Below are positions 610 through 62,700 of a DNA stretch of 64,000 bases, piece after piece (positions within the stretch are counted from its first letter, which is position 1; each line of letters starts with the position of its first letter). The stretch comes from Podarcis bocagei (Eukaryota). The position numbers and the translations under genes were made by a program. The notes beneath the pieces are model-generated. The model had not been told where the DNA came from. It was given only the letters and a program-made list of their open reading frames with translations, and ran no database searches. The stretch lies in the NCBI GenBank assembly GCA_964188305.1, contig OZ076885.1; one strand, written 5' to 3'.

Positions 610-3600
610 CTAAAACAATAAGAAGCATGGGACATCCAGTTTCTTACTGAACATTTGACACCTTTCCAAAATAAACAGCAGCAGCCATAGTTGGCAAATG
701 GCACTGACATTGAACAACATATTCCCTTCCCCTTACACACACCATGAGCAAGGAGTGGGATCCCACCATATTTAATCTGACATCCTCCTCTTGCCCACAC
801 ACTCCTGTTGTCTATCTCAACAGGAATGTCCTGTTTTTCTTTATCTCAGGATGTGTGAGAAAGAGAGTTGTGCACACACACTACTATTGCCACCTGATTG
901 AATGAGAGGGAGAGTGACCAATATGCCCCCACCACTGTGAATCTACTACAAACTGGGCATTGTGACCTGTTGCTAATGTTGCCTGGTCATTGAAAGACTG
1001 GTCATTATGACCTCATGCTTATGCTGCCTGCCAGGAGACTGGCTGACCCATGTGCCCTCATACTGATGTTACCCAACCAAAGGAAAAACCGGACAACTTG
1101 CCCTCCCAATGCTACTGCACACCTGAAGGAGGCAGCGACTTATATACCTGCATATAACTGTCCACTTTAATGAGAATTAAATGAGTTTGCAGGGCAGCAG
1201 TTGAAGAAGGAGCAAAAAGGGTTTTCTTGTGTGTGTGTGTTTCTTGTGGCTGATTAGCTCTTTTCCCTGTGTAAAGGTCAGAGGGGGCAGGGTTTCTGTT
1301 GAGGCAGGGGATTAGCTGTGGGAGGAGCTTATCAGAGTTTGCAGGGCAGCAGTTGAAGAAGGAGCAAAAAGGGTTTTCTTGTGTGTGTGTGTTTCTTGTG
1401 GCTGATTAGCTGTTTTCCCTGTGTAAAGGTCAGAGGGGGCAGGGTTTCTGTTGAGGCAGGGGATTAACTGTGGGAGGAGCTTATCAGAGTTTGTAGGGCA
1501 GCAGTTGAAGAAGGAGCAAAAAGGGTTTTCTTGTGTGTGTGTGTTTCTTGTGGCTGATTAGCTGTTTTCCCTGTGTAAAGGTCAGAGGGGGCAGGGTTTC
1601 TGTTGAGGCAGGGGATTAGCTGTGGGAGGAGCTTATCAGAGTTTGTAGGGCAGTGGCGCGCGCCTAGCGGCGCGTGCAGTTATATCCATCTTTTAGATTT
1701 AGGGGAGCTAGTCTCAAACGTTTGTTGGGGGAGACCTAGGTTTTTTTTGTGGGCGAAGTTATTTGTCCTGTCTTCAAGCTTTTTATGATGGAGGACCTCT
1801 GTAGCCACCCCCAACAACACGATCTCAAGATGGAAGGGGAGGGAACAGCTGCAGTCGCCTGCGATTCCTGCGCAATGTTTGCCATCTTGCCAAAGGTTGC
1901 AGGCAGCTTCACCTGCAGCAATTGCATGTTGATTGCCCTTTTATTTTATTTTTTTTAAGTATTTTTATTGGGTTTTCACATTTTATATAAACACAAACAA
2001 CACACATAACACCCAAACAAACATAAAAAACGACAAACATGAATAGTTCCCGAAAATCTTATTTTCTAACCCTAGTCCTTGACTTCCCCCCACCCCCTCC
2101 CCTGCATCCCTGTTCCCAAATTTGTGTCAGCAAGTTGGCATTTCTTCCGTCTTAGTATTAGTCCTTTTATAAAAAACAAAAATAAATTTTCCCTAAGTTG
2201 GACCCAATTCTCTTCCCTCGATTTCTCATTTTTTCTTACATAATTTTCTTATTACTAAACCCCCTGGTCTTGAGTGTTGTTTAAATTTAAGTACTTCCCT
2301 CCCTCCCATCCCCGCTTTGCGTCCTTTCCCAAGACATGTCCAAAATAACAGTTTTTAGCCTGGATTCCGCACATCCGAGGCTCTCAAATCTCTTTCAGTC
2401 CCTCTCCGCCAATTTTGTTGGTAGTCCTTTTTGTCTATCATCGAGTCTCGAAAGATTTCCTTAACCATCAATCCAATCAGTCCATAGTCTCTTCCCATAT
2501 TTAAAGGCAACTGCTGAGGAATTTCCACAAGGCCTAAGTCTTGGTGATAGTCAAAATCGAAGTCTATGTGGAGGCCCCAATTGTACTTCTTTATTTCGAG
2601 TTCCTGAATTCCATAAAGTCCCAGGGCCTCCACTTTCGTCTTCTGTATCTTTCGTAGGCTTAAAGTAGATTTAATCCAATAGTCTCCTTGCTTGTGTTCT
2701 CCAGATGTCGGCTTCTGGTTAGTATTTTCCCAGATAACTTGTTCTCTTTCTTGTTTTGTCTTCTCCTCTTCTTTGTTTATAGTTTCGAATTCAGCTGTGG
2801 GTTCTTTCTCACTCAGGCCCTCATTACATTCAGCAGAGCTACTTGTTTCCAAATCCAAGGTCGTCAATTGTTTACTCATAGCTGTAGTCTGCTCCTGTAA
2901 GGTTCCCACCAGTGAAAACATCCTTTCGATTTCTCTCAGTATCTTTCCACCCACAGCCATTGTAATTCCACAGAATTCCCCCTAGAGGGAATCTGGTTAC
3001 TGAGTAATCTTTTCTCCAACAATCCTCTGTCCTATTATTGTTTCTTTGTTTCCCAAAATTTTAGTTCAATTGTAACTCCTTTTAATCCGGAGAGGTCTTA
3101 AACGGCGATTTTTTTTCACTATTAATAGTCCATTTGACAGCTTTTGACAGCTGTCAAATTCTGCTCCTCTATACAGGCTCCAAAGCAGGTCGCTCCCGGG
3201 CCCGGGAGGGAGGGTTGTTTGCCACAAAACAAAGACTCTTCCAACACTCCACTCTCCTGCTCAAATTTACCTTTCTAAATCTTGGAAGTTACTGTCTTTT
3301 TAAAACTCACCCTTTACAGGGTAGGCACTCCAGCTTAGCTCTTATTTCGTTGCTCTGGATCGTCTGCAAGGGGGGGTGTGGGGACTTCCTTTTGGCACAC
3401 CCCCCGGTCGTCTCAAATTCAGAAGGTAAAAATTTTAAAGTTCAGTTCCAAATTACTCACGGGTTCTTTTTTCAGTCCGAATTTCAAGGAAGGAAGTCAG
3501 CGCTCTCCAGTTATGGCTCGCGGCTTCGCTCAGCGGCGGTAGCGGTCGACTCTCAGTGCCACGCCGTCCCCTGTATCCCCTCCGTAGCCTTTAAAAAGGC

Positions 3601-6600
3601 TCATTGCGAATCAGGGGGGGGCGCTTAAGGCACCCGCCGAGTCTTCAGTCCGCAGGCTTCTGCGCCTGCGGTTTTTAAGGGTCCCCGTGTCGCCGGCACG
3701 GCAAAGACCCATCCACCGCTGAGCCGATTCCCTCCGGAGCTCGGAGGGAATCCGCCATTTCCCGATCGCGTGTTGATTGCCCTTTTAAAAGACAAAGTCC
3801 AGCAACTGGAGGAACGTGTAGCTACGCTCCAAAGAATTAGAGAGCTGGAGCTCTTCTTGGAAGCAACAGAGCACACCGTCCCCACCAAGGAGGAGACAGG
3901 GGACTCCCCTGAGAAGGAGGCTAGTTCATCAACACAGGAGCCAGATATATGGAGAAACGTGACTCAAAGAAGTAGGAGGCCCAGGGTTCACTCTGATTGT
4001 TTAGAAATACACAATCGCTTTGAGGTCCTCTCCCCTAGCATGGAAGATGAAGAGCAGACTCCATTTGAGGATCTCTCCCTCATTACAGTCGATCAGGTAT
4101 ATGAAGACGAGCAGCAAAGTCAGTCCTCAGGGAATGTGCAGGCGACCTTGGAACGGACAGCTCACGGAAGAACCCCGACCAAACCCAAGAGGAGGCGTGT
4201 AGTGGTGATAGGGGATTCCCTACTGAGGGGAACAGAAGCAGTGATCTGTGGGCCTGACAAGATGTCTCGGGAAGTGTGCTGTCTCCCCGGGGCTAAGATC
4301 CAAGATGTAACTGAACGACTGCAAGGAATCATAAAACCCACTGACAAATACCCCTTCCTCTTGGTTCATGTGGGAACCAATGACACTGCAAGCAATAGCC
4401 TCCAGAAGATCAAAAGAGACTACGAGGCTCTCGGCAGGAAATTGAAGCAACTAAATGCACAAATTGTCATCTCGTCTGTCCTCCCAGTTGAACGACGTGG
4501 CCCAGGGAGAGAGGGGAAAATAGTGGAAGTGAACAGCTGGCTTCGCAAATGGTGTAAACAGGAACGGTTTGGATTCTTAGATCACGGACTGCAGTTTCTT
4601 GAAGATGGACTTCTGGCAAGTGATGGGCTGCACCTCACAACGGTTGGGAGGAATGTTTTTGCCAAAAATCTCAGAAACCTCATCAGGAGGGCTTTAAACT
4701 GACTAATGTGGGGGAGGGAGACAGTGCTCCTGAAGGTAGGAGTCTATCAATTAATGAAGATGATCATCCAAATGTCATAGACCAAATGGAGCAAACAGCA
4801 CGCGGACCTAGTGGTGGGAGGAAAAAATCCTTAAATAAGAGACACGGGGGAATGATTAATGGACTTCAATGTCTGTACACTAATGCGCAAAGCATGGGAA
4901 ATAAACAAGATGAGCTTGAGCTCTTGGTACAGCAAACTAAATATGACATAATAGGCATCACTGAAACCTGGTGGGATAAGTCCCACGATTGGAATGTAAT
5001 AATGGGGGGATACAATCTATTTCAGAGAAACAGACCAGACAAGAAAGGAGGAGGAGTGGCGTTATATGTCAGGGATGTGTATACCTGTGAAGAGATCCAA
5101 GATTTAGAACCTCAAAGCCAATGTGAGAGCATTTGGGTCAAAATTAAGGGAGAGAAGAATAACAGAGACCTCATTGTGGGAGTTTACTATAGATCCCCAA
5201 GCCAAACGGAGGACATAGATGATGCCTTCCTGGAACAGATGGCCAAGCATGCAAAAGGAAGGGAGATAGTAGTAATGGGGGACTTCAATTACCCGGATAT
5301 TTGTTGGACGTCAAACTCAGCCAAGAGCATAAGGTCAAACAGATTCCTCACTGGCCTTGCAGACAACTTCATTGTCCAGAAAGTGGGAGAAGCAACAAGA
5401 GGAACAGCCATTTTAGATCTGGTCCTAACCAATGTTGATGACCTGGTTAGTGGGGTAGAAGTGGAAGGATCATTAGGCGCGAGTGATCATGCTCTTCTGA
5501 AGTTTACTATACAGCGGAAAGGAGCAGCCAAGCATACTAGGACTCAATTTCTTGACTTTAAGAAAGCCGACTTCATAAAACTTAGGGAAGTGCTGGGTGA
5601 GATCCCATGGACAGCAATACTAAAAGGAAAGGGAGTTCATGATGGCTGGGAGTTTGTTAAGAGGGAGATAGTAAAAGCACAACGTCAGGCAATACCAATG
5701 AGACGGAAACATGGAAGGTGCCTAAAGAAGCCAGGGTGGCTATCTAAAGAACTTTTAACTGAATTAAGATTAAAAAAGGATGTGTACAAAAAATGGAAAA
5801 GGGGGGAAACCACCAAAGAGGAATTCAAACAAATAGCCAGAACGTGTAGACACAAAGTCAGAAAAGCTAAAGCACAGAATGAACTCAGGCTTGCTAGAGA
5901 GGTTAAAAGCAACAAAAAAGGCTTTTATGGGTATGTTCGTAGCAAAAGGAAGAACAAAGAAACAGTGGGGTCACTCAGAGGAGAAGATGGTGAAATGCAA
6001 ACAGGGGACACAGAAAGGGCTGAACTCCTCAATGCCTTCTTTGCCTCAGTCTTCTCCGATAAAGAAAACAATGCCCGACCTGAAGAATTTGGAGCAAATG
6101 ATTCAGCAAAGGAAACACAGCCCAGAATAACTAAGGAGACAGTACAAGAATATTTGGCTAGTTTAGATGTATTCAAGTCTCCAGGGCCAGATGAACTGCA
6201 TCCAAGAGTATTAAAAGAACTGGCAGATGTGATCTCAGAACCACTGGCAGTCATCTTCGAGAAATCCTGGAGAACAGGCGAAGTCCCGGCAGACTGGAGG
6301 AGGGCAAATGTTGTCCCTATTTTCAAAAAGGGGAAAAGAGAGGACCCAAATAATTACCGCCCAGTCAGTCTGACATCAATAGCAGGGAAGATTCTGGAGC
6401 AGATCATTAAGCAAACAGTCTGTGAGCACCTAGAAAGGAATGCTGTGATCACCAATAGTCAGCATGGATTTCTGAAAAATAAGTCATGTCAGACTAACCT
6501 GATCTCATTTTTTGACAGAATTACAAGCCTGGTAGATGAAGGGAACTCAGTGGATATAGCCTATCTTGATTTCAGCAAGGCATTTGACAAGGTGCCCCAT

Positions 6601-9187
6601 GATATTCTTGTAAAGAAGCTGGTAAAATGCGGTCTTGACTCTGCTACCACTCAGTGGATTTGTAACTGGCTGACTGACCGAACCCAAAGGGTGCTCATCA
6701 ATGGTTCCTCTTCATCCTGGAGAAGAGTGACTAGTGGGGTGCCACAGGGTTCTGTCTTGGGCCCGGTCTTATTTAACATCTTTATCAACGACTTGGCTGA
6801 TGGACTCAAGGGCATCCTGATCAAATTTGCAGATGACACCAAACTGGGAGGGGTGGCTAACACCCCAGAGGACAGGATCACACTTCAAAACGACCTTGAC
6901 AGATTAGAGAACTGGGCAAAAACAAACAAAATGAATTTTAACAGGGAGAAATGTAAAGTATTGCACTTGGGCAAAAAAAATGAGAGGCACAAATACAAGA
7001 TGGGTGACACCTGGCTTGAGAGCAGTACATGTGAAAAGGACCTAGGAGTCTTGGTTGACCACAAACTTGACATGAGCCAACAGTGTGACGCGGCAGCTAA
7101 AAAAGCCAATGCAATCCTGGGCTGCATCAATAGGAGTATAGCATCTAGATCAAGGGAAGTAATAGTGCCACTGTATTCTGCTCTGGTCAGACCACACCTG
7201 GAGTACTGTGTCCAGTTCTGGGCACCACAATTCAAGAAGGACACTGACAAACTGGAACGTGTCCAGAGGAGGGCAACCAAAATGGTCAAAGGCCTGGAAA
7301 CGATGCCTTATGAGGAACGGCTAAGGGAGCTGGGCATGTTTAGCCTGGAGAAGAGGAGGTTAAGGGGTGATATGATAGCCATGTTCAAATATATAAAAGG
7401 ATGTCACATAGAGGAGGGAGAAAGGTTGTTTTCTGCTGCTCCAGAGAAGCGGGCACGGAGCAATGGATCCAAACTACAAGAAAGAAGATTCCACCTAAAC
7501 ATTAGGAAGAACTTCCTGACAGTAAGAGCTGTTTGACAGTGGAATTTGCTGCCAAGGAGTGTGGTGGAGTCTCCTACTTTGGAGGTCTTTAAGCAGAGGC
7601 TTGACAACCATATGTCAGGAGTGCTCTGATGGTGTTTCCTGCTTGGCAGGGGGTTGGACTCGATGGCCCTTGTGGTCTCTTCCAACTCTATGATTCTATG
7701 ATTCTATGATTCTATGATTAATTGTTCCCTTTGTGGCACATATGCAAGATGAAAATATTTTGTAAGTATTCTTCTCAGATTTATAATAAGATCATTTCAT
7801 TTTTTGATGTCCGTGTGCAAATTGGTCAGCATTTGATCTTACTCTGGCATGGACCCAAAGCCATCTTCCTTTCAAGTAGTTCCTCAGTTGTCAGCATTCA
7901 AATGTCAATGTTAACTTTTAGTACAGACATAGGCAAACTCGGCCCTCCAGATGTTTTGAGACTACAACTCCTATCATCCCTAGCTAACAGGACCAGTGGT
8001 CAGGGATGATGGGAGTTGTAGTCCCAAACCATCAGGCGGGCCAAGTTTGCCTATGCCTGTTTTAGTATAACGATCATCATTTTTACTGATGCTGCTGTGT
8101 ATATTGTTATTGTAATTATTTATTGATTTCATTTATGAATCACCTCCTACAAGGCATCCCAAAGTGATTTACCGTACAATACAGTAAAAACAGACATAGA
8201 ACAATTGAATATATTAATTTCACTTCTCTGCCCAGACACACCCCACTATGCGTTTTTGACCTTTTAAAATCCCACACATCTTCACCTGCTCTTGGCTTTA
8301 AAGGGCCAACAATTTCCCCGCCTTGAGGCGTGATCTCCAAGCCATGCCCTGCTGTTTCGAATATATTATGCAGGTTAGTGCTTTGAAGTAATCCACACGC
8401 TACTTTCTTATCAACGGATGTATAGCCAAGAATTCTCTTTATATTAGGCTTGTAATGAAATTGAGACCTACAAAGCTAACAAAACCCAGATTAACTCAAC
8501 AAATACTCATTCAGCCTTGCTTCTTCTTCCTGATGAGTAGCAAAATTATTGGATGCAGCTCTACCATTTGTGCCTAATCTAATGTCAAAAAAAACTAACG
8601 AAATGCCATCAGGACTTCCCCACCTCCTTCCATCCACTCCCTAAATCTGTTCTTAGGGTTCCCCCAATTCTCCATGACTGATTTGGTGAGGGTGCAGGAC
8701 ACACATCAAGGGAGAGAAGGGAAGTCCCATTGCACAGGTAGAAGTCCTTGTGTTGATGAGACACATTAGTTGGATACCACCCACGGTGTGAGTCATTGAT
8801 GAGACCAAAAGAAATAACGTTCTCTATGCTCAAGAAGAACTAGGTGTTAAGTCAAGAACTCCTTGGCTAACTTCAAGGAAGACTATGGATATATAGTTGA
8901 TTCAGTGTCTCTCTCAAAGTTCCCAGATGCTGGTCTCCACACACTGCACAATCTTAAACTTTGCACATTTGAGTGGAGTTTCCAGCAAAGATTTGACAGG
9001 GCTCCTTGCTGCTAATGTAGATGTCTCTCGAAGACCTTGTATGTTGACAGGCCTATTCAGTTGTTTAAACCTTTTCAAGATGAGCCAGTCACTTTTATGA
9101 TTATTTTGCATTGTTTTTATGGTATTTTATGCTTTATCTTACTTCCATATTTTGTTGTACACCACCTTGATATTTTATATGAGGGGT

Positions 9188-18200: not shown

Positions 18201-21200
18201 GCTAGGGCAAATACACTTCCCATTAGCACTCAGGAAGCTCACTTGAGCGCATGGAGTGGTTAGGGTACATATATCACTGCCACGAGCTTAAGCCCTTACA
18301 CATTGCATGTCTTGTGTTTCACAACTTTTCTGGCATTCTGATCCAGTCACACTTCGGCCAGCAGAGCTGCAGTCAAAGTAGGACATTGGATAAGGGCAAT
18401 CTGGAACAAGGACACAATTACCAAGACAAGAAAGCAAGACAGTGTAAAACTATGCATAGCACTCAGCAGACTCCAGAACCCCAGATGTCTAAAATGTAAA
18501 ACCATTCCAACCATCAAGGGCATAGATATATGCTCATAATTTTCCTTCTCTACGGAAGCTTTATTATCGCTGTCTCCCAATGTTAGTGACACAATAGATG
18601 TGATGCAAGTGATCTGTTGTCAAACCCCCCAATGCTTTTTTCTTTACTTGAACTGGATTGAGGGGTGAGTAGCAGCTTAACTCAAATCACGCTCCTTTAC
18701 AAACTTATTCAGAGATGGCGATAGAGATAGAGCTTGTCCTAAAGCAGATAGAGGCAACTTTAAAAGCTACATACAAGAGCTGTAGAGATTGTGTCCTCCC
18801 TAAAAGAGGGAACGTTTTGCAATGAGACCTGGAGACCAATCCCCTGTGTTGTGGGTGGGTAAGATTGGTCAGCCACAACACCCGATTGGTAGGTCCCTCA
18901 GTGCTGGGTTTTATCGGACCAATAGGGTGCAGTCCAAATGGATTGAGGGACCTATACATACCCATGCACATGACCCAGAGCTTCCACTTTTGGTGCGTGC
19001 ATTCAGAACACCCGCCCACCTCTCCCTGTTTTTAGGGCTTGTGCGCTTGACCTTCTATGCCATTGTGTGTCGTCTGTCGTTGGGACAGGGGCAGGAATTT
19101 TCCCCACTTGGCTGATTGGCTGTTGCCATTTGGGTTTCGCCTGCTGTGTAGCAAATCGTCACAACTTGTAAGGTTGTGGATAGGCCCTGGTTCAGGTGAT
19201 AGGGATGGGGGAACACTCTCCCATCCCTATGTGAAGGGTATTCTGTGAAAGGAATCCAGGGACTCGATGGTTTGGTCAACCCCTGAGAGGGGGTTGTGCC
19301 CATGCCTGAGTCTAGGGGGACATCTTGATGGCGGACATGGTCTGCTCCCGACTTTTTGCCTATCCAGGTGTTCACCCTTGGCTGACCTATGCTGGAACTC
19401 TGGGTCAGCGCTACCTGCAAGTGTGTAGGGAGCTAGTCGAACCAGAGCCTATGCCACCACTCACTTTCTGTAATCAATAAAGTTGTGGCCTAAATTCTGC
19501 CAAAAACCAAACTAAAATTTGAGTCAAGTGTGAATTTATTCAGCGGGGAGGTTTCTGGGTCATAACACGCAAAAGCAAATGCAGAGGGGACGGGGTTGAA
19601 TTTGATCCCTAAATCTAGGATTCTCCAGAGGATCAAGAAGGATCAGATCCTAACTTGTGCATGTGGAACGCGACAGTAGTTCAAAACAAATGTCAGATTC
19701 CAACATCTTGGTTTAAAGTTGCATAGTAAGTAAAAAAGAGGTCTTACCTTTCTTTGTTTCTGTGTTTTCAATGCAATCTAATTGTCCTCGAATGCACTTG
19801 CTAGAGATATTAAAACACAAAAGGGAAGTCTCACACAAATGCATAAAGAGGGGGTGTGGAAAACTACCCAAGTTCCAGTCATGCAAATACACCCATCCCC
19901 AAGATAAGCCATATCTGTAATCTATATCTTGCCCCTTGGAAACAAATGCCTTTTAAAATCAAGGTGCCTTTAATTAACAGGTTCTGGTTCTTTTGAGGAT
20001 TTGCAACAACCTTTTACAGACATGTTTTGACTATTAATATGGTTGTGAGGAAGGTGCAGGGGAGGTTGTATTTCCTGAGAATGCTCAGGGGACTGAATCT
20101 ATCCCAGCACCTACTTCTGTCCTATTATCATAGTACCATTGAGAGTGTCTTAACCTATAGTATATTATCGTGGTATGGGAGCAGCTCTGAAACGGATAAA
20201 AAAGCTTTACAGAGAACAATTAAAATTGCCCAGAATGTTATTGGGCTCCGACTACCAACCCTGGATGAGATCTTCACGTCTCGCATTTTGAAGAAGTCAT
20301 ATAATATACTGAGAGATCCCACCCATCCTGCTCACAACTTCTTTGAACTATTGCCTTCGGGCAGAAGATATAGGACAATGAAAACACGAACCACACGCCT
20401 TCTGAATAGTTTCTATCCAAGAGCTCTGATTGCACTAAATAATGATCTCAGGGCCAGTTGCAAGGTTTAGCAAGCAGAGAGTAGGAAGGAATGAGATAGG
20501 TTTTAGGTTATGTTTTAGGTTTTAGGTTATGTTATGCCTTAATAGGTCATGTTATATTCTGGATTATGTTATGTTTTATAGATTATGTCTGAATAGGATG
20601 AGAGTGTCGGAGATACGTGCAAATGTATATGTGAACCCGGTCTTTGGGTGGGTGTTTGATTTTCGTTGTTGTGTATACTGTGTATATACGGACAATGACA
20701 ATAAATTTATCTATCTATTAACTAAATAACTTTACCACACGAGCTCATCCTTTTGAAATGAACTTCTGGGTTGTATCAGCAGGCCCTTGTGGTAACATGG
20801 ACAGTCCTCTGGAAAGACACATTCTTCCTCATTCATTAGGTAAGTTCCCTCAGGGCAGCTGCAGCCATCCACAGGGATAGTCTGAACACTGCATAGCACA
20901 TCAGGCTCCCTCAGGGACCGGCAAGAGTTGTTGCAGAACTTCACTTCATAGCTGTATACCATATTCTTAGGGCACTCTGCTGAGGCATCTTTGCAAAAGA
21001 AGAAAAACAAGGGATAGAATGAGCAAAGTGAGTATGCTTATCTTAGACTCCAAAGAACAATAGTTTATTTCACAAGGGAAGCAGCAAGGCTCCTTGCAGG
21101 AGGCCCTTCAAAACAAATGAGACAAGCTGCAATCCCAAACATAATGGAAATGATTTCCCTTGATTTTAATGAAGCAGGTTGGTTGGTGAAGTCAATGTGA

Positions 21201-23558
21201 TGCACCTAAATTATTAGTTTGTTTTCCACATTTTGCAGGAATTTGCAATTGGGGAAAAAATGAAATTTCATCAGCCTTTTCCTGTGAATTTATGTTAATG
21301 AACACATTTTTATATGCAGTTTTGACTATGTGCAATTTTTGTGCATACCACATGTCATTATTTTTTTTAACAAATATATTCATTTATGCATGCTTTCCCC
21401 TAATATATGCAGTTCTGTTCGGAGAATTGCATCGCAAAGTTCAGATAATGTAAGTGCAAATTTCAAAGAATGGCTGTGTTTTGGTTAGCATATTGTTTTA
21501 GAAAGCGTAAATTTGATGGATTCAGTTTTAAATGCAAGCTGGACCATAAAGAAGGCTGATCGCCGAAGAATTGATGCTTTTGAATTATGGTGCTGGAGGA
21601 GACTCTTGAGAGTCCCATGGTCTGCAAGAAGATCAAACCTATCCATTCTTAAGGAAATCAGCCCTGAGTGCTCACTGGAAGGACAGATCCTGAAGCTGAG
21701 GCTCCAATACTTTGGCCACCTCATGAGAAGAGAAGACTCCCTGGAAAAGACCCTGATGTTGGGAAACATGAAGGAAACAAGGAGAAGGGGACAACAGAGG
21801 ACGAGATGGTTGGACAGTGTTCTCGAAGCTACCAGCATGAGTTTGACCAAACTGCGGGAGGCAGCGGAAGACAGGAGTGCCTGGCATGCTCTTGTCCATG
21901 GGGTCACAAAGAGTCGGACACGGCTAAACGACTAAACAAGAGAATCAGATTCCACCCCGCCCCCAATCACTATTGGACAAACATTGGTTCTGCCCCTGCA
22001 CACCCATCATTGGGATGGAAGAGAAAAACTGATTTGTGAAGCTTCCCCCCCCCCCCCATCATTACACAACCATTCTGGGTGTGGATGCCATTTGATTATT
22101 TTTTTAAAAAATGATCAGTCCTGAAAGTACTATGTACATGGCAAAGAGCTCACCAAATGTGTTCCATATTACTTTAAGTGTATGCTACTTTGAATTATTA
22201 AAAATGGCTTAGGAGTACGAGAGAATAACACACCACACCTACCACAGATGCTGCCTCTCCATCCTTTCAAGTGGATGCCTTCTGCGGCACAATCTCTGGC
22301 ATAGCCAGAGAAAACGCTGCACAGAGCCTCTTTGCTTTTCTCAGCACTGCAAGTGTCGTAAACGCAGTTCTAAGTAATAAACGCAGAAGCAGATATAAGA
22401 ATCAGTGCTCAAAAGAAGCGTCACATTCACCAACAGATAAATGACAGAGTGAGAGTGGGCTCCTCTGTTCAAAGAAGCAGCATGGATTGCTTGTGTTTCT
22501 GCCTTGACCGCTTCTTGGCATGTATAAACAAGTTCTAATTTCAGGGGAAAGCTCTCTGTCAAAGAATGTCCATTTATGACACATATATATGTCATTGCAA
22601 AGGGGAATTAATGCAGCTCTGTGACTAGAACATCCTCTTTTTCCTCAAATAAATAATCGGGATATTTGATCCTGCAAGGTTGAAATCATATTCCAAAATT
22701 CACTTATCAAAACCTTTTTCTTTCTTTCTCTTGCTTTAGTTCTTTTCACCTTTTTATTGCTATAAGAAAATGATACAAAAAATACCCCCAAAAAATGAAG
22801 AAAGAAAAAGGAGGAGATTCAGTCTTATTTCTTTGGCTCAGGCCTCATTTCCAAGAAATTCATGTTACATTTCTTGAGATATAGGGAAAGCGGTTCACTG
22901 TTCCCAGACAGGCCACCAGAGGGCAACTATACCTTCCTGTACAGCTTATCTGCCAGCTACTTAAGCTCTAAAGAGCTGCTCTTTCATACTGTCAGAAGAT
23001 GTGATGATGGTTCCGCTGGCTTATTTCATCTCACTCACAAAAAGTAGAACACCCCTGTGGCAAAATAGCTTGCAGAGCTTCCATAATTTATTCAACTTTA
23101 TGGGAAGCAGACATGGGCAAGCTGAAACATAGCAACTACTTAGATCGTTGCCTATCGGATCAGAATGCACCTGACATTGTGCCAGATATGAGAGGAGATG
23201 TTTTAAAATAGGAATGAATCCTTGCCTTACCTTGATATAAGGAGCTGGGTCATTAACAGAATGGCACTCAGCAAATACCCCCTTTGCATCCAGCAGAAGG
23301 GCACACCAACGCTGCCCATATTTTTCTATAAGAGAAAATGAGGATTCCCAAAGATTATTTACAAAATGGGAGTCATTCAAATGCCACACTAATGAGTGAA
23401 AATATCACCTGCATTTTACAAGGAGCTTGCTTTAATAGCATCATCATCATCACCATCATCTGGGCTGCTTACAGCATATATAAAAACATAATCAAACATT
23501 AAGAAACAGAATACCTTATACAGACTATAAATAAACCAATAAGCCAATAGAAAATAAA

Positions 23559-59783: not shown

Positions 59784-62700
59784 CCTATCTATCATCTATC
59801 TATCTGTTGGATGAAATCTAACATTGTGTGAGTGGGCTTTGCTTGCACAATAGGACATTTCCTTCCCTTGGGTCCCTTCCAACTCTATGATTCTATTATT
59901 CTCTCCTCCCCATAGCCTCTTCAAAACTCCCCTCCTGATGGATAGGCCATTTTACTGACAAATAGGCACAACTGGATCCTAGGCTGTGTTAAGAAGCCAA
60001 ATCACTTATTGTTGGCAAAGCGTTAACTCAACCCAAAGTAGCATGTTAACAGTTTATAGTTTAAACTATGTAAATGTCATGAAAAATGAGTCAAGGGAGA
60101 TACAGTACAAACTAATTTTCAAATCTGTTATTAATTATCTAGTTAACAGGGTGTAGCTTTAAATCATAAAAGGCATTTGACTCATACCTCTACTTTGATA
60201 GGAACAGATGAGAGAGTGTGTATGCGTATATCCTGAGTCTCATGCTTTATAATGAGAGTACGTGGACAGGACACTGGTTCCCTTGGGTCACAGTGATAGT
60301 TATCAATGTACACTCCAAAGTTGTCGATGGTTTTTACAATCTCTTCCACCAGGGTGTAGGTACAGTTGCCTTGGTAACTGTAGTAGAGGCCATCAAAGGT
60401 CTTATAATGTGGGTCTCCCCAGCCGGTGCAGTAGCCTTTAGAGAGACAATAAAATTGATTGGTTGGTTCTTGTTTGGCAGCACACATAGGAATATGAATA
60501 ACATTTTGTTTCAGGAAGGGGGAAGAGAGCCTAATGGCTCTTGCACTGAGAAAGTCTAGATGGAGTTTGTCACAGAAACTGTGACATTGAGTAAGAGACT
60601 GTCAGCCCCACTAGCAGCACTAATGGCTCAAGAAACTAGAATCTCCTTCTTGTGCGTATTACAATAACATCAAAACACAGGATGGCAAAGAAGCAATTTG
60701 TTTTAGATCTCCATTTGTATTATCAGGCATTATGTGCTCATTAGCAAAACATATATTTTTGACATTAGGGGCATGGCTTCCAGGTGCCACTCCCCCCTTC
60801 TCCTCTACCAGCCCCCATTTCTCCTCCTCTTGCGCCTCACCCTCACTTACTGTAACACAAAACATATTTTTTCTTTAACACCACTGGCACTGCTACTGCC
60901 ACTAAGAGGAGGATGGGAGCAGGGTGGCACATTGAGGAGAATGGGGGTGGGGGCAGTGCAAACCCCTTGTGCAGGACCTACTTAAAAGTGAAATTCTAAA
61001 AATAAGATACAAATCTTCAAGCTTTTCTGGAAGCTGTCTTTTTAGACCTGGAAGCCATGCCTCACATTGATTATTTTCAAAATAAAAAAAATTCCTTACA
61101 GTAGCACCTTAAAGACCAACTAAGTTAGTTCTTGGTATAAGCTTTCGTGTGCATGCACACTTCTTCAGATACACTGAAACAGAAGTTGCCAGATCCTTCT
61201 ATATATTGAGAAGGTGGGGAGGGGTATTACTCAGAAGGGTGGTGGGAATCGGAGATTGGCAGATAGCTGAGATGAGCCTGTTGACGACTCTTAACGACTG
61301 TAATAGGTCTTACAGGAAAAGGCAAGGGGTGAGAAGGTGAGAAATGGCTTAGTCATGTATAATGAGATAAGAATCCAATGTCTCTGTTCAGACCAGGTCT
61401 CTGAAGGACACTGAAGGAGCTGAAGGACACTGTTGGCATTTGATGGCATACACAATGTTAGACGATGAGCAATTAAATAGTCCCGAGATGGTATGTGTGA
61501 TGTTGTTGGGGCTGGACAGCCACCCAATCTTAAACAACTCCTAACCCACAATAATACTACAACCAGACTTAACACGGACACTGGCACCAGAGCCTGCAAT
61601 AAACCCAGATGCCAACTTTGCTGCCACATACACCCGGACAACACCATTACTGGCCCCAACAACATCACACATACCATCTCGGGACTATTTAATTGCTCAT
61701 CGTCTAACATTGTGTATGCCATCAAATGCCAACAGTGTCCTTCAGCTCTCTATATTGGACAAACAGGCCAAAACTTACGCCAAAGAATAAACGGACATAA
61801 ATCTGACATCAAGAATCACAAAACAGAGAAACCAGTAGGAGAACACTTCAATCTCCCAGGACATTCTATACAAGATCTCAAAGTAGCTGTTTTACTACAA
61901 AGGAATTTCAGAAATAGACTGGAAAGAGAAGCTGCTGAATTACAACTCATTACCAAACTTAAAACAATGGAGAGACCTGGTCTGAACAGAGACATTGGAT
62001 TCTTATCTCATTATACATGACTAAGCCTTTTCTCACCTTCTCACCCCTTGCCTTTTCCTGTAAGACCTATTACAGTCGTTAAGAGTCGTCAACAGGCTCA
62101 TCTCAGCTATCTGCCAATCTCCGATTCCCACCACCCTTCTGAGTAATACCCCTCCCCACCTTCTCAATATATAGAAGGATCTGGCAACTTCTGTTTCAGT
62201 GTATCTGAAGAAGTGTGCATGCACACGAAAGCTTATACCAAGAACTAACTTAGTTAGTCTTTAAGGTGCTACTGTAAGGAATTTTTTTTTATTTTGACTA
62301 TGGCAGACCAACACGGCTACCTATCTGTAATTGATTATTTTGTTACTGTGTGTGATAAGGGAAGAGCATTTCTTGCATATGTTTGCAGGCTCCTTTCAAT
62401 CCTTGCACCGAAAAGGGTTCAGAGGGTGAGCCATGAGCAGAAACTCCCTCACTCTATGTTCAAACATATGAAAGACACAAAATATCTAATTGCAGCTCTA
62501 CACTGATACAGGTATTCAAAGGGGAAACAAAAAGTTATATGATGCACTTATACTGCCATACATCCTGAATTTCCAGGACACGTCCTGGAATTCGCTTCCA
62601 AAAATGGCGTCTTGGATTATTTTCAGTAATCAGGCAAATGTCCTAGAAAACTGGCAACGGGCTAAATTGTGCCGAAAATGCCTAAGAAAGCTCCAAAGCT

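Follow-up and report, generated by a model that had tools for sequence, protein, structure and literature searches.

Here, we describe a retroposon of 1827 bp inserted in a 64,000-nt stretch of the genome of the lacertid lizard Podarcis bocagei (contig OZ076885.1 of assembly GCA_964188305.1), to which we refer as the window. The insert lies antisense in a CR1 element that spans positions ~1183 to 7719, and it splits open reading frame (ORF) 1 of this host element (Table 1). It is bracketed by a perfect target-site duplication (TSD) and carries a single ORF of 201 codons but neither a reverse transcriptase (RT) nor an endonuclease (EN). Probably, we are dealing with a young and seemingly full-length member of a ~1.8-kb non-autonomous, polyadenylated retroposon family of lacertids, which is moved in trans by L1 and encodes an orphan protein that is under selection.

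The junctions of the insert point to L1-type integration in three respects. First, identical 17-mers (TGTTGATTGCCCTTTTA, 17/17) bracket the insert as a TSD. Of the direct pairs with a spacing of 300 to 8000 bp across the 64-kb window, no other exact 17-mer pair in its region stands alone, all others being parts of longer repeats, and the chance expectation for a stand-alone pair of this type is ~0.03. Second, the priming (+) strand of the empty site has the sequence CCCTTTT(A)/AAAG and is, thus, of the TTTT/A(A) type, which is the preferred cleavage site of the L1 endonuclease. The position of the junction is ambiguous by 1 nt because the tail of the element ends in TAAAA, like the target. Third, one end of the insert is A-rich and is preceded by the polyadenylation hexamer AATAAA; because this A-rich end lies at the low coordinates, the sense strand of the insert is the minus strand. 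Altogether, the insert combines a TSD in the range of 7 to 20 bp, a TTTT/AA-like nick, and an A-rich tail after a polyadenylation signal, i.e., the marks of a poly(A)-type insert mobilized by L1 through target-primed reverse transcription.

The host element gives the insert a relative age. Both TSD copies encode MLIALL in the same codon phase and, therefore, ORF1 of the CR1 was open across the empty site. Without the insert, this ORF would encode 357 amino acids (aa) with PHD-like cysteines and a GDSL esterase domain, and it is followed by ORF2, an open frame of 942 aa that includes EN and RT domains. The insert interrupts ORF1 and is, thus, necessarily younger than the CR1. The residence of this young copy in a young CR1 suggests that wall lizards may still harbor an active system.

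The 201-aa ORF is the only ORF of more than 100 aa on the sense strand, and the chance of an ORF of 201 codons at this base composition is ~7e-7. In Pfam, its product had no credible match and, in particular, none to RVT, Exo_endo_phos, or Transposase_22. The ORF is preceded by a leader, i.e., the 5' untranslated region (UTR), the first 330 nt of which have a GC content of 0.60 and an observed/expected ratio for CpG of 1.10. The ratio is 0.45 in the remaining leader, 0.50 in the ORF, and 0.31 in the flanking CR1; in view of these differences, the CpGs of the leader have not decayed. Nucleotides 1 to 290 of the leader are predicted to fold with −146 kcal/mol (z = −6.2 relative to 200 dinucleotide shuffles), and this fold contains a perfect 11-bp hairpin at element nt 19 to 45. 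A YY1-like box, AAATGGCGG, lies close to the 5' end in a position that we take to resemble that of the YY1 site of human L1 at +13 to +21. On its sense strand, the 3'UTR contains two G-quadruplex motifs of canonical form, and two or more such motifs were found in 0 of 2000 shuffles of the 3'UTR. A frameshifted relative of the protein from Podarcis lilfordi (P0018) reads through a G-rich stretch similar to that of motif 1.

The observations on the element and its host bear out what a sequence-only reading of this locus had described, i.e., the perfect 17-bp TSD at a TTTT/AA site, the A-rich tail with AATAAA, a leader of ~800 bp (810 nt) with a CpG-rich 5' part, a G-rich 3'UTR (411 nt), a single intact 201-aa ORF devoid of RT, EN, and a recognizable RNA-recognition motif of ORF1, and an almost intact, young CR1 host that must be older than the insert.

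As nucleic acid, the element was searched in Rfam and in the window. Rfam gave no match on either strand at E values up to 1 and, thus, neither a known RNA family nor a Pol III head, and the only match for the element that blastn found in the window was the element itself, with no second copy. A short interspersed element (SINE) was ruled out as a candidate, since there is no tRNA, 7SL, or 5S head in Rfam and 1827 bp compares with a limit of ~600 bp. The heptamer GGAAGTC, which follows the second G-quadruplex motif in the 3'UTR, recurs in the leader at 3383–3389, and its complement GACTTCC lies at 3492–3498 on the minus strand (element nt 273–279); the expectation is ~0.11 occurrences per 7-mer. 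At element nt 1, a complement of a 3'UTR motif of the GGAAGTCC type was not found, GACTTCC occupying nt 273 to 279 instead. The leader also contains a perfect 12-bp palindrome, TGACAGCTGTCA (3143–3156, minus strand), that resembles a TGIF/MEIS site built around an E-box and is directly followed by a second CTGTCAAA.

The 201-aa protein has relatives, ~25 of which are present in public protein sets. A word search recovered five (41 to 85% identity; 176 to 201 aa). From an alignment of these, an exhaustive hidden Markov model (HMM) search of 1.84 billion cluster representatives recovered nine clusters at 50% identity, the representatives of which are 176 to 215 aa long except for one frameshifted copy of 129 aa; none exceeds 215 aa. 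A second word search with a 13-sequence alignment, in which E values of 10 and below were admitted, yielded a single additional fragment and did not recover an ORF1p. The named members are exclusively "hypothetical predicted proteins" of P. lilfordi, and these map to contigs of 136.9, 123.2, 103.1, 98.3, 89.6, and 62.8 Mb, i.e., to at least six chromosomes, while further relatives are found on numerous short contigs of Logan. The protein collection searched does not contain the window protein in its exact form. The nearest cluster is 85 to 87% identical to the window protein and comprises seven near-identical variants, and the Logan contigs that carry them reach 1814 bp, approximately the length of the element. 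Indirectly, at the level of the protein, these sequence comparisons suggest that the element belongs to a multi-copy, deeply diverged ORF family rather than being single-copy.

Conservation within this family is concentrated at the two ends of the protein. In the alignment of 13 sequences of the family, in which identity to the window protein drops to 25%, full-length members start with MA..GK...E..R...L.G.LQ and end with ...LRD...(V/L)R(N/D/S)PG-stop, in which the last residues, P and G, are invariant, while the middle is variable and contains many in-frame indels. Accordingly, the mean pairwise identity is 0.49 for residues 1 to 45, 0.29 for residues 46 to 100, 0.31 for residues 101 to 165, and 0.60 for residues 166 to 201. 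Neutral decay to 25% identity would wreck a frame of 600 nt and, therefore, we take the protein to be under selection in propagating lineages, as judged from the alignment. As a candidate function of the tail, a 2A ribosome-skipping peptide was rejected: such peptides are defined by D(V/I)ExNPG with an invariant N and a P after it, whereas DVRNPG-stop has neither the E nor the following P, and its N varies (N, D, or S).

The sequence-only reading had kept three simpler accounts in view, and none of them is upheld by the family. A single-copy retrocopy does not fit the spread of relatives over six or more chromosome-size contigs of P. lilfordi and over many Logan contigs; a one-off internal deletion of a known L1 does not fit full-length relatives that, at 25 to 87% identity, keep a length of 176 to 215 aa together with the last residues; and a neutrally evolving ORF does not fit termini that are conserved at 49 and 60% as opposed to 29 to 31% in the middle.

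Structure predictions locate the ordered part of the protein at its N terminus. With 6 and then 13 sequences, AlphaFold2 returned models with a mean predicted local distance difference test score (pLDDT) of 42 and then 47; with the 13-sequence alignment, the only part predicted with confidence was a helix comprising residues 3 to 48 (pLDDT 75 to 89). A three-copy complex prediction for residues 1 to 60 gave a score of 0.25, the mark being 0.32. The last 36 residues are basic in most members.

Several points weigh against our interpretation of the element. First, an L1 RT motif is absent from the window, in which the motif scan found only the RT of the CR1. Second, the A-rich tail is merely 13 nt long and the hexamer lies just 7 nt ahead of it. 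Third, everything past residue 92 of the protein is predicted with a pLDDT below 50. Fourth, every full-length member is acidic with an isoelectric point of 4.5 to 6.4, an ill fit with a nucleic-acid chaperone like ORF1p; the ORF1p of L1, which chaperones RNA, is basic and contains an RNA-recognition motif (RRM). Finally, only open frames enter the protein sets, which hides decayed copies and makes the apparent constraint in part a product of ascertainment.

We suggest a mechanism in which the element supplies its own RNA and a small protein and borrows the enzyme. The CpG-rich, folded first 300 nt together with the YY1-like box would serve as leader and as internal promoter for Pol II, thereby letting each new copy be transcribed. 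The resulting polyadenylated RNA would then undergo target-primed reverse transcription at TTTT/A nicks by the ORF2 protein (ORF2p) of an autonomous L1 acting in trans. The small acidic protein made from the element RNA would aid that RNA to reach or hold the L1 enzyme, with the N-terminal helix enabling self-assembly or the joining of L1 ORF1p and the mostly basic tail contacting RNA or ORF2p. The L1-type integration marks and the absence of RT and EN support the earlier proposal of a non-autonomous, L1-mobilized element, to which L1 would supply the enzyme and the family of which may be active at present.

For the protein, two possible origins deserve to be weighed. It is quite possible, if short of an even chance, that the element is a lizard L1 that has lost ORF2 and that its protein is a strongly shrunken ORF1p, which has lost the RRM but preserves the coiled coil together with the last part of the C-terminal domain (CTD); such an origin would be compatible with the mechanism. 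A leader, a single ORF, a G-rich 3'UTR, and poly(A) are the layout of an L1 without ORF2; a long N-terminal helix is also how ORF1p begins; and the LRD motif ~30 residues before the end brings to mind the conserved LRDF close to the end of mammalian ORF1p, a resemblance that we treat as a lead only. By sequence, however, the protein does not group with L1 ORF1p as defined by coiled coil, RRM, and CTD (Transposase_22). Thus, Transposase_22 and the other L1 ORF1 families of Pfam were not matched by any of the 13 members at E values up to 10, and no family recurs among members; profile searches against all PDB chains gave helical matches at chance level alone and no L1 ORF1p chain; ESM Atlas returned no match for the whole protein or for residues 95 to 201; and the HMM search of the 1.84 billion representatives recovered no relative longer than 215 aa. 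The protein is also acidic, and the predicted model, which is confident for the N-terminal helix alone, shows no RRM-like fold.

The second origin, which we put forward tentatively and hold to be on the doubtful side, is that of an adaptor, acidic and for the most part disordered, that does not descend from L1 ORF1p but was evolved or captured by a non-autonomous element as a means of linking its own RNA to the L1 particle. Such an adaptor could join the coiled coil of ORF1p via its N-terminal helix or hold ORF2p via its fixed C-terminal tail. The sequence-only reading had offered a decoy, a ribonucleoprotein adaptor, or a remnant of ORF1 or ORF2, and had proposed a comparison with the termini of the L1 proteins by HHpred and AlphaFold. 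No similarity to ORF1p or ORF2p was detectable by sequence, PDB profile searches were free of ORF1p, and the AlphaFold2 model was confident for the helix alone.

Our interpretation assigns a function to the protein, while an unlikely alternative is that the RNA is what is conserved and the ORF is a passenger whose product lacks a function, its open frame and fixed C-terminal codons being constrained by RNA structure, by 3' recognition, or by ribosome residence. Conservation is indeed strongest at the extreme 3' end of the ORF, disorder is predicted for most of the protein, and the three-copy prediction for residues 1 to 60 came without a verdict. On the other hand, the length of the ORF has survived many in-frame indels even where identity drops to 25%, conservation of the N-terminal helix takes the form of a protein pattern, and RNA constraint alone would not bar stop codons and frameshifts over 600 nt.

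We regard it as very unlikely that the insert is instead a processed retrocopy of a lizard-specific host gene that L1 copied once or a few times and that does not propagate itself. The TSD, the A-rich tail, and AATAAA would fit a processed pseudogene equally well, as would an ORF without a transposon domain. However, six or more chromosome-size contigs of one species harbor relatives, there are nine deep clusters with the ORF kept open, an 810-nt CpG-rich leader travels with the copy, and neither the word searches nor the HMM search of the protein sets found a named host gene. A drive by another LINE, i.e., CR1, L2, RTE/Bov-B, or Penelope, each of which has left remnants in the window, is highly improbable: although the window holds the young CR1 together with Bov-B-like and Penelope-like ORFs, the CR1 here ends in an 8-bp microsatellite rather than in poly(A), blastn in the window found no sequence common to the element and the CR1, and a 17-bp TSD at TTTT/A with an A-rich tail is established as the pattern of L1.

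With the element read as an L1-mobilized retroposon that encodes its own protein, its closest known counterpart is HAL1. According to PMC5753468 (citing Smit 1999; Bao & Jurka 2010), HAL1 is a derivative of L1 in which ORF1p alone remains and which has arisen several times independently in mammals. Mammalian HAL1, which depends on L1 as the element probably does, resembles the element in being non-autonomous and in having a single ORF in the place of ORF1, its own leader, and a terminal poly(A), with ORF2 lacking, whereas HAL1 encodes a recognizable ORF1p and the protein of the element matches no ORF1p model, is acidic, and is ~40% shorter than mammalian ORF1p. They differ also in their hosts, i.e., mammals as opposed to a lacertid lizard. 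Thus, what the element has in common with HAL1 is its layout. Our full-text literature searches found no report of HAL1-like elements in squamates.

Three other systems share part of this design. SVA and LAVA of hominoids are, like the element, polyadenylated, devoid of an enzyme, and flanked by L1-type TSDs; they are transcribed by Pol II, 1 to 3 kb long, and moved in trans by L1. However, SVA is a composite of known repeats that encodes no protein, while the element carries an ORF that we take to be selected. HeT-A of Drosophila telomeres is likewise a non-LTR retroposon that keeps the first (Gag-like) ORF and obtains RT from another element, but its Gag is recognizable and it is targeted to telomeres, whereas the element inserts at dispersed TTTT/A sites. 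Finally, processed pseudogenes and retrogenes share the TSD, poly(A), and lack of introns with the element; by contrast, they have no internal promoter and found no families, while the ORF family of the element is multi-copy and deeply diverged.

Known riders of L1 either encode nothing, as in the case of SINEs and SVA, or keep a normal ORF1p, as in the case of HAL1; this element keeps a small protein that is not ORF1p-like and has lost the enzyme. If true, an adaptor would represent a strategy of protein-coding hyper-parasitism on LINEs that has not been described so far. The element would show the minimal protein function by which an RNA competes for L1 ORF2p and would give a natural handle on cis-preference. 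The young copies suggest possible ongoing activity and, hence, a system that would be open to experiment.

Table 1. Features of the retroposon and of its CR1 host, with positions counted from the first nucleotide of the 64,000-nt window.
Feature	Position	Strand	Basis or remark
Host CR1, 5' part: 3.1 copies of a 152-bp monomer (1183–1653) and start of ORF1 (1785–1943)	1183–1943	+	
TSD copy adjoining the A-rich 3' end of the element	1927–1943		Exact, 17/17 with 3771–3787
Retroposon body, 1827 bp, without RT or EN	1944–3770	−	ORF, Pfam, and blastn analyses
A-rich tail, 13 nt with one T, running into TAAAA of the TSD	1944–1956	−	Read from sequence; junction ambiguous
Polyadenylation hexamer AATAAA	1964–1969	−	Read from sequence
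3'UTR, 411 nt, rich in purines and G	1944–2354	−	Sense-strand anatomy
G-quadruplex motif 2, followed by GGAAGTC at 2081–2087	2093–2117	−	Regular-expression match
G-quadruplex motif 1, ~40 nt past the stop codon	2297–2313	−	Regular-expression match
ORF, 201 codons and stop	2355–2960	−	N-terminal helix, variable acidic middle, conserved C-terminal tail ...ASDVRNPG
5'UTR, 810 nt	2961–3770	−	Sense-strand anatomy
CpG-rich 5' part of the leader, element nt 1–330; candidate internal promoter and structured RNA leader	3441–3770	−	CpG observed/expected ratio, GC, fold
YY1-like box AAATGGCGG, element nt 11–19	3752–3760	−	Read from sequence; putative
TSD copy adjoining the 5' end of the element	3771–3787		Exact match
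Host CR1, 3' part: remaining ORF1 with GDSL esterase domain (to 4702), ORF2 with EN and RT (4708–7536), and (TCTATGAT)n tail (7687–7719)	3788–7719	+	

The host CR1 itself shows few signs of decay. The monomers in its 5'UTR, 3.1 tandem copies of 152 bp, are 98% identical, and this array recalls the monomeric promoters of mouse L1. A TGA closes ORF2 33 codons before its apparent natural end (...QWNLLP...MSGVL-stop; 7534–7636) and is, besides the insertion, the only visible defect of the element. The tail of the CR1 is (TCTATGAT)4, i.e., the 8-bp microsatellite referred to above.

Elsewhere in the window, three further ORFs on the plus strand resemble parts of retroelements. The ORF at 20027–20470 resembles the C-terminal part of a LINE ORF2 and matches ALKBH8_N (E = 7e-11), a model that often matches LINE tails. 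The ORF at 21513–21935 also resembles the C-terminal part of a LINE ORF2 and is Bov-B/RTE-like by eye, with no match in Pfam. Finally, the 175-aa ORF at 61493–62020 contains a GIY-YIG nuclease domain (Pfam E = 1e-6) and probably represents the endonuclease-bearing terminus of a Penelope-like element.

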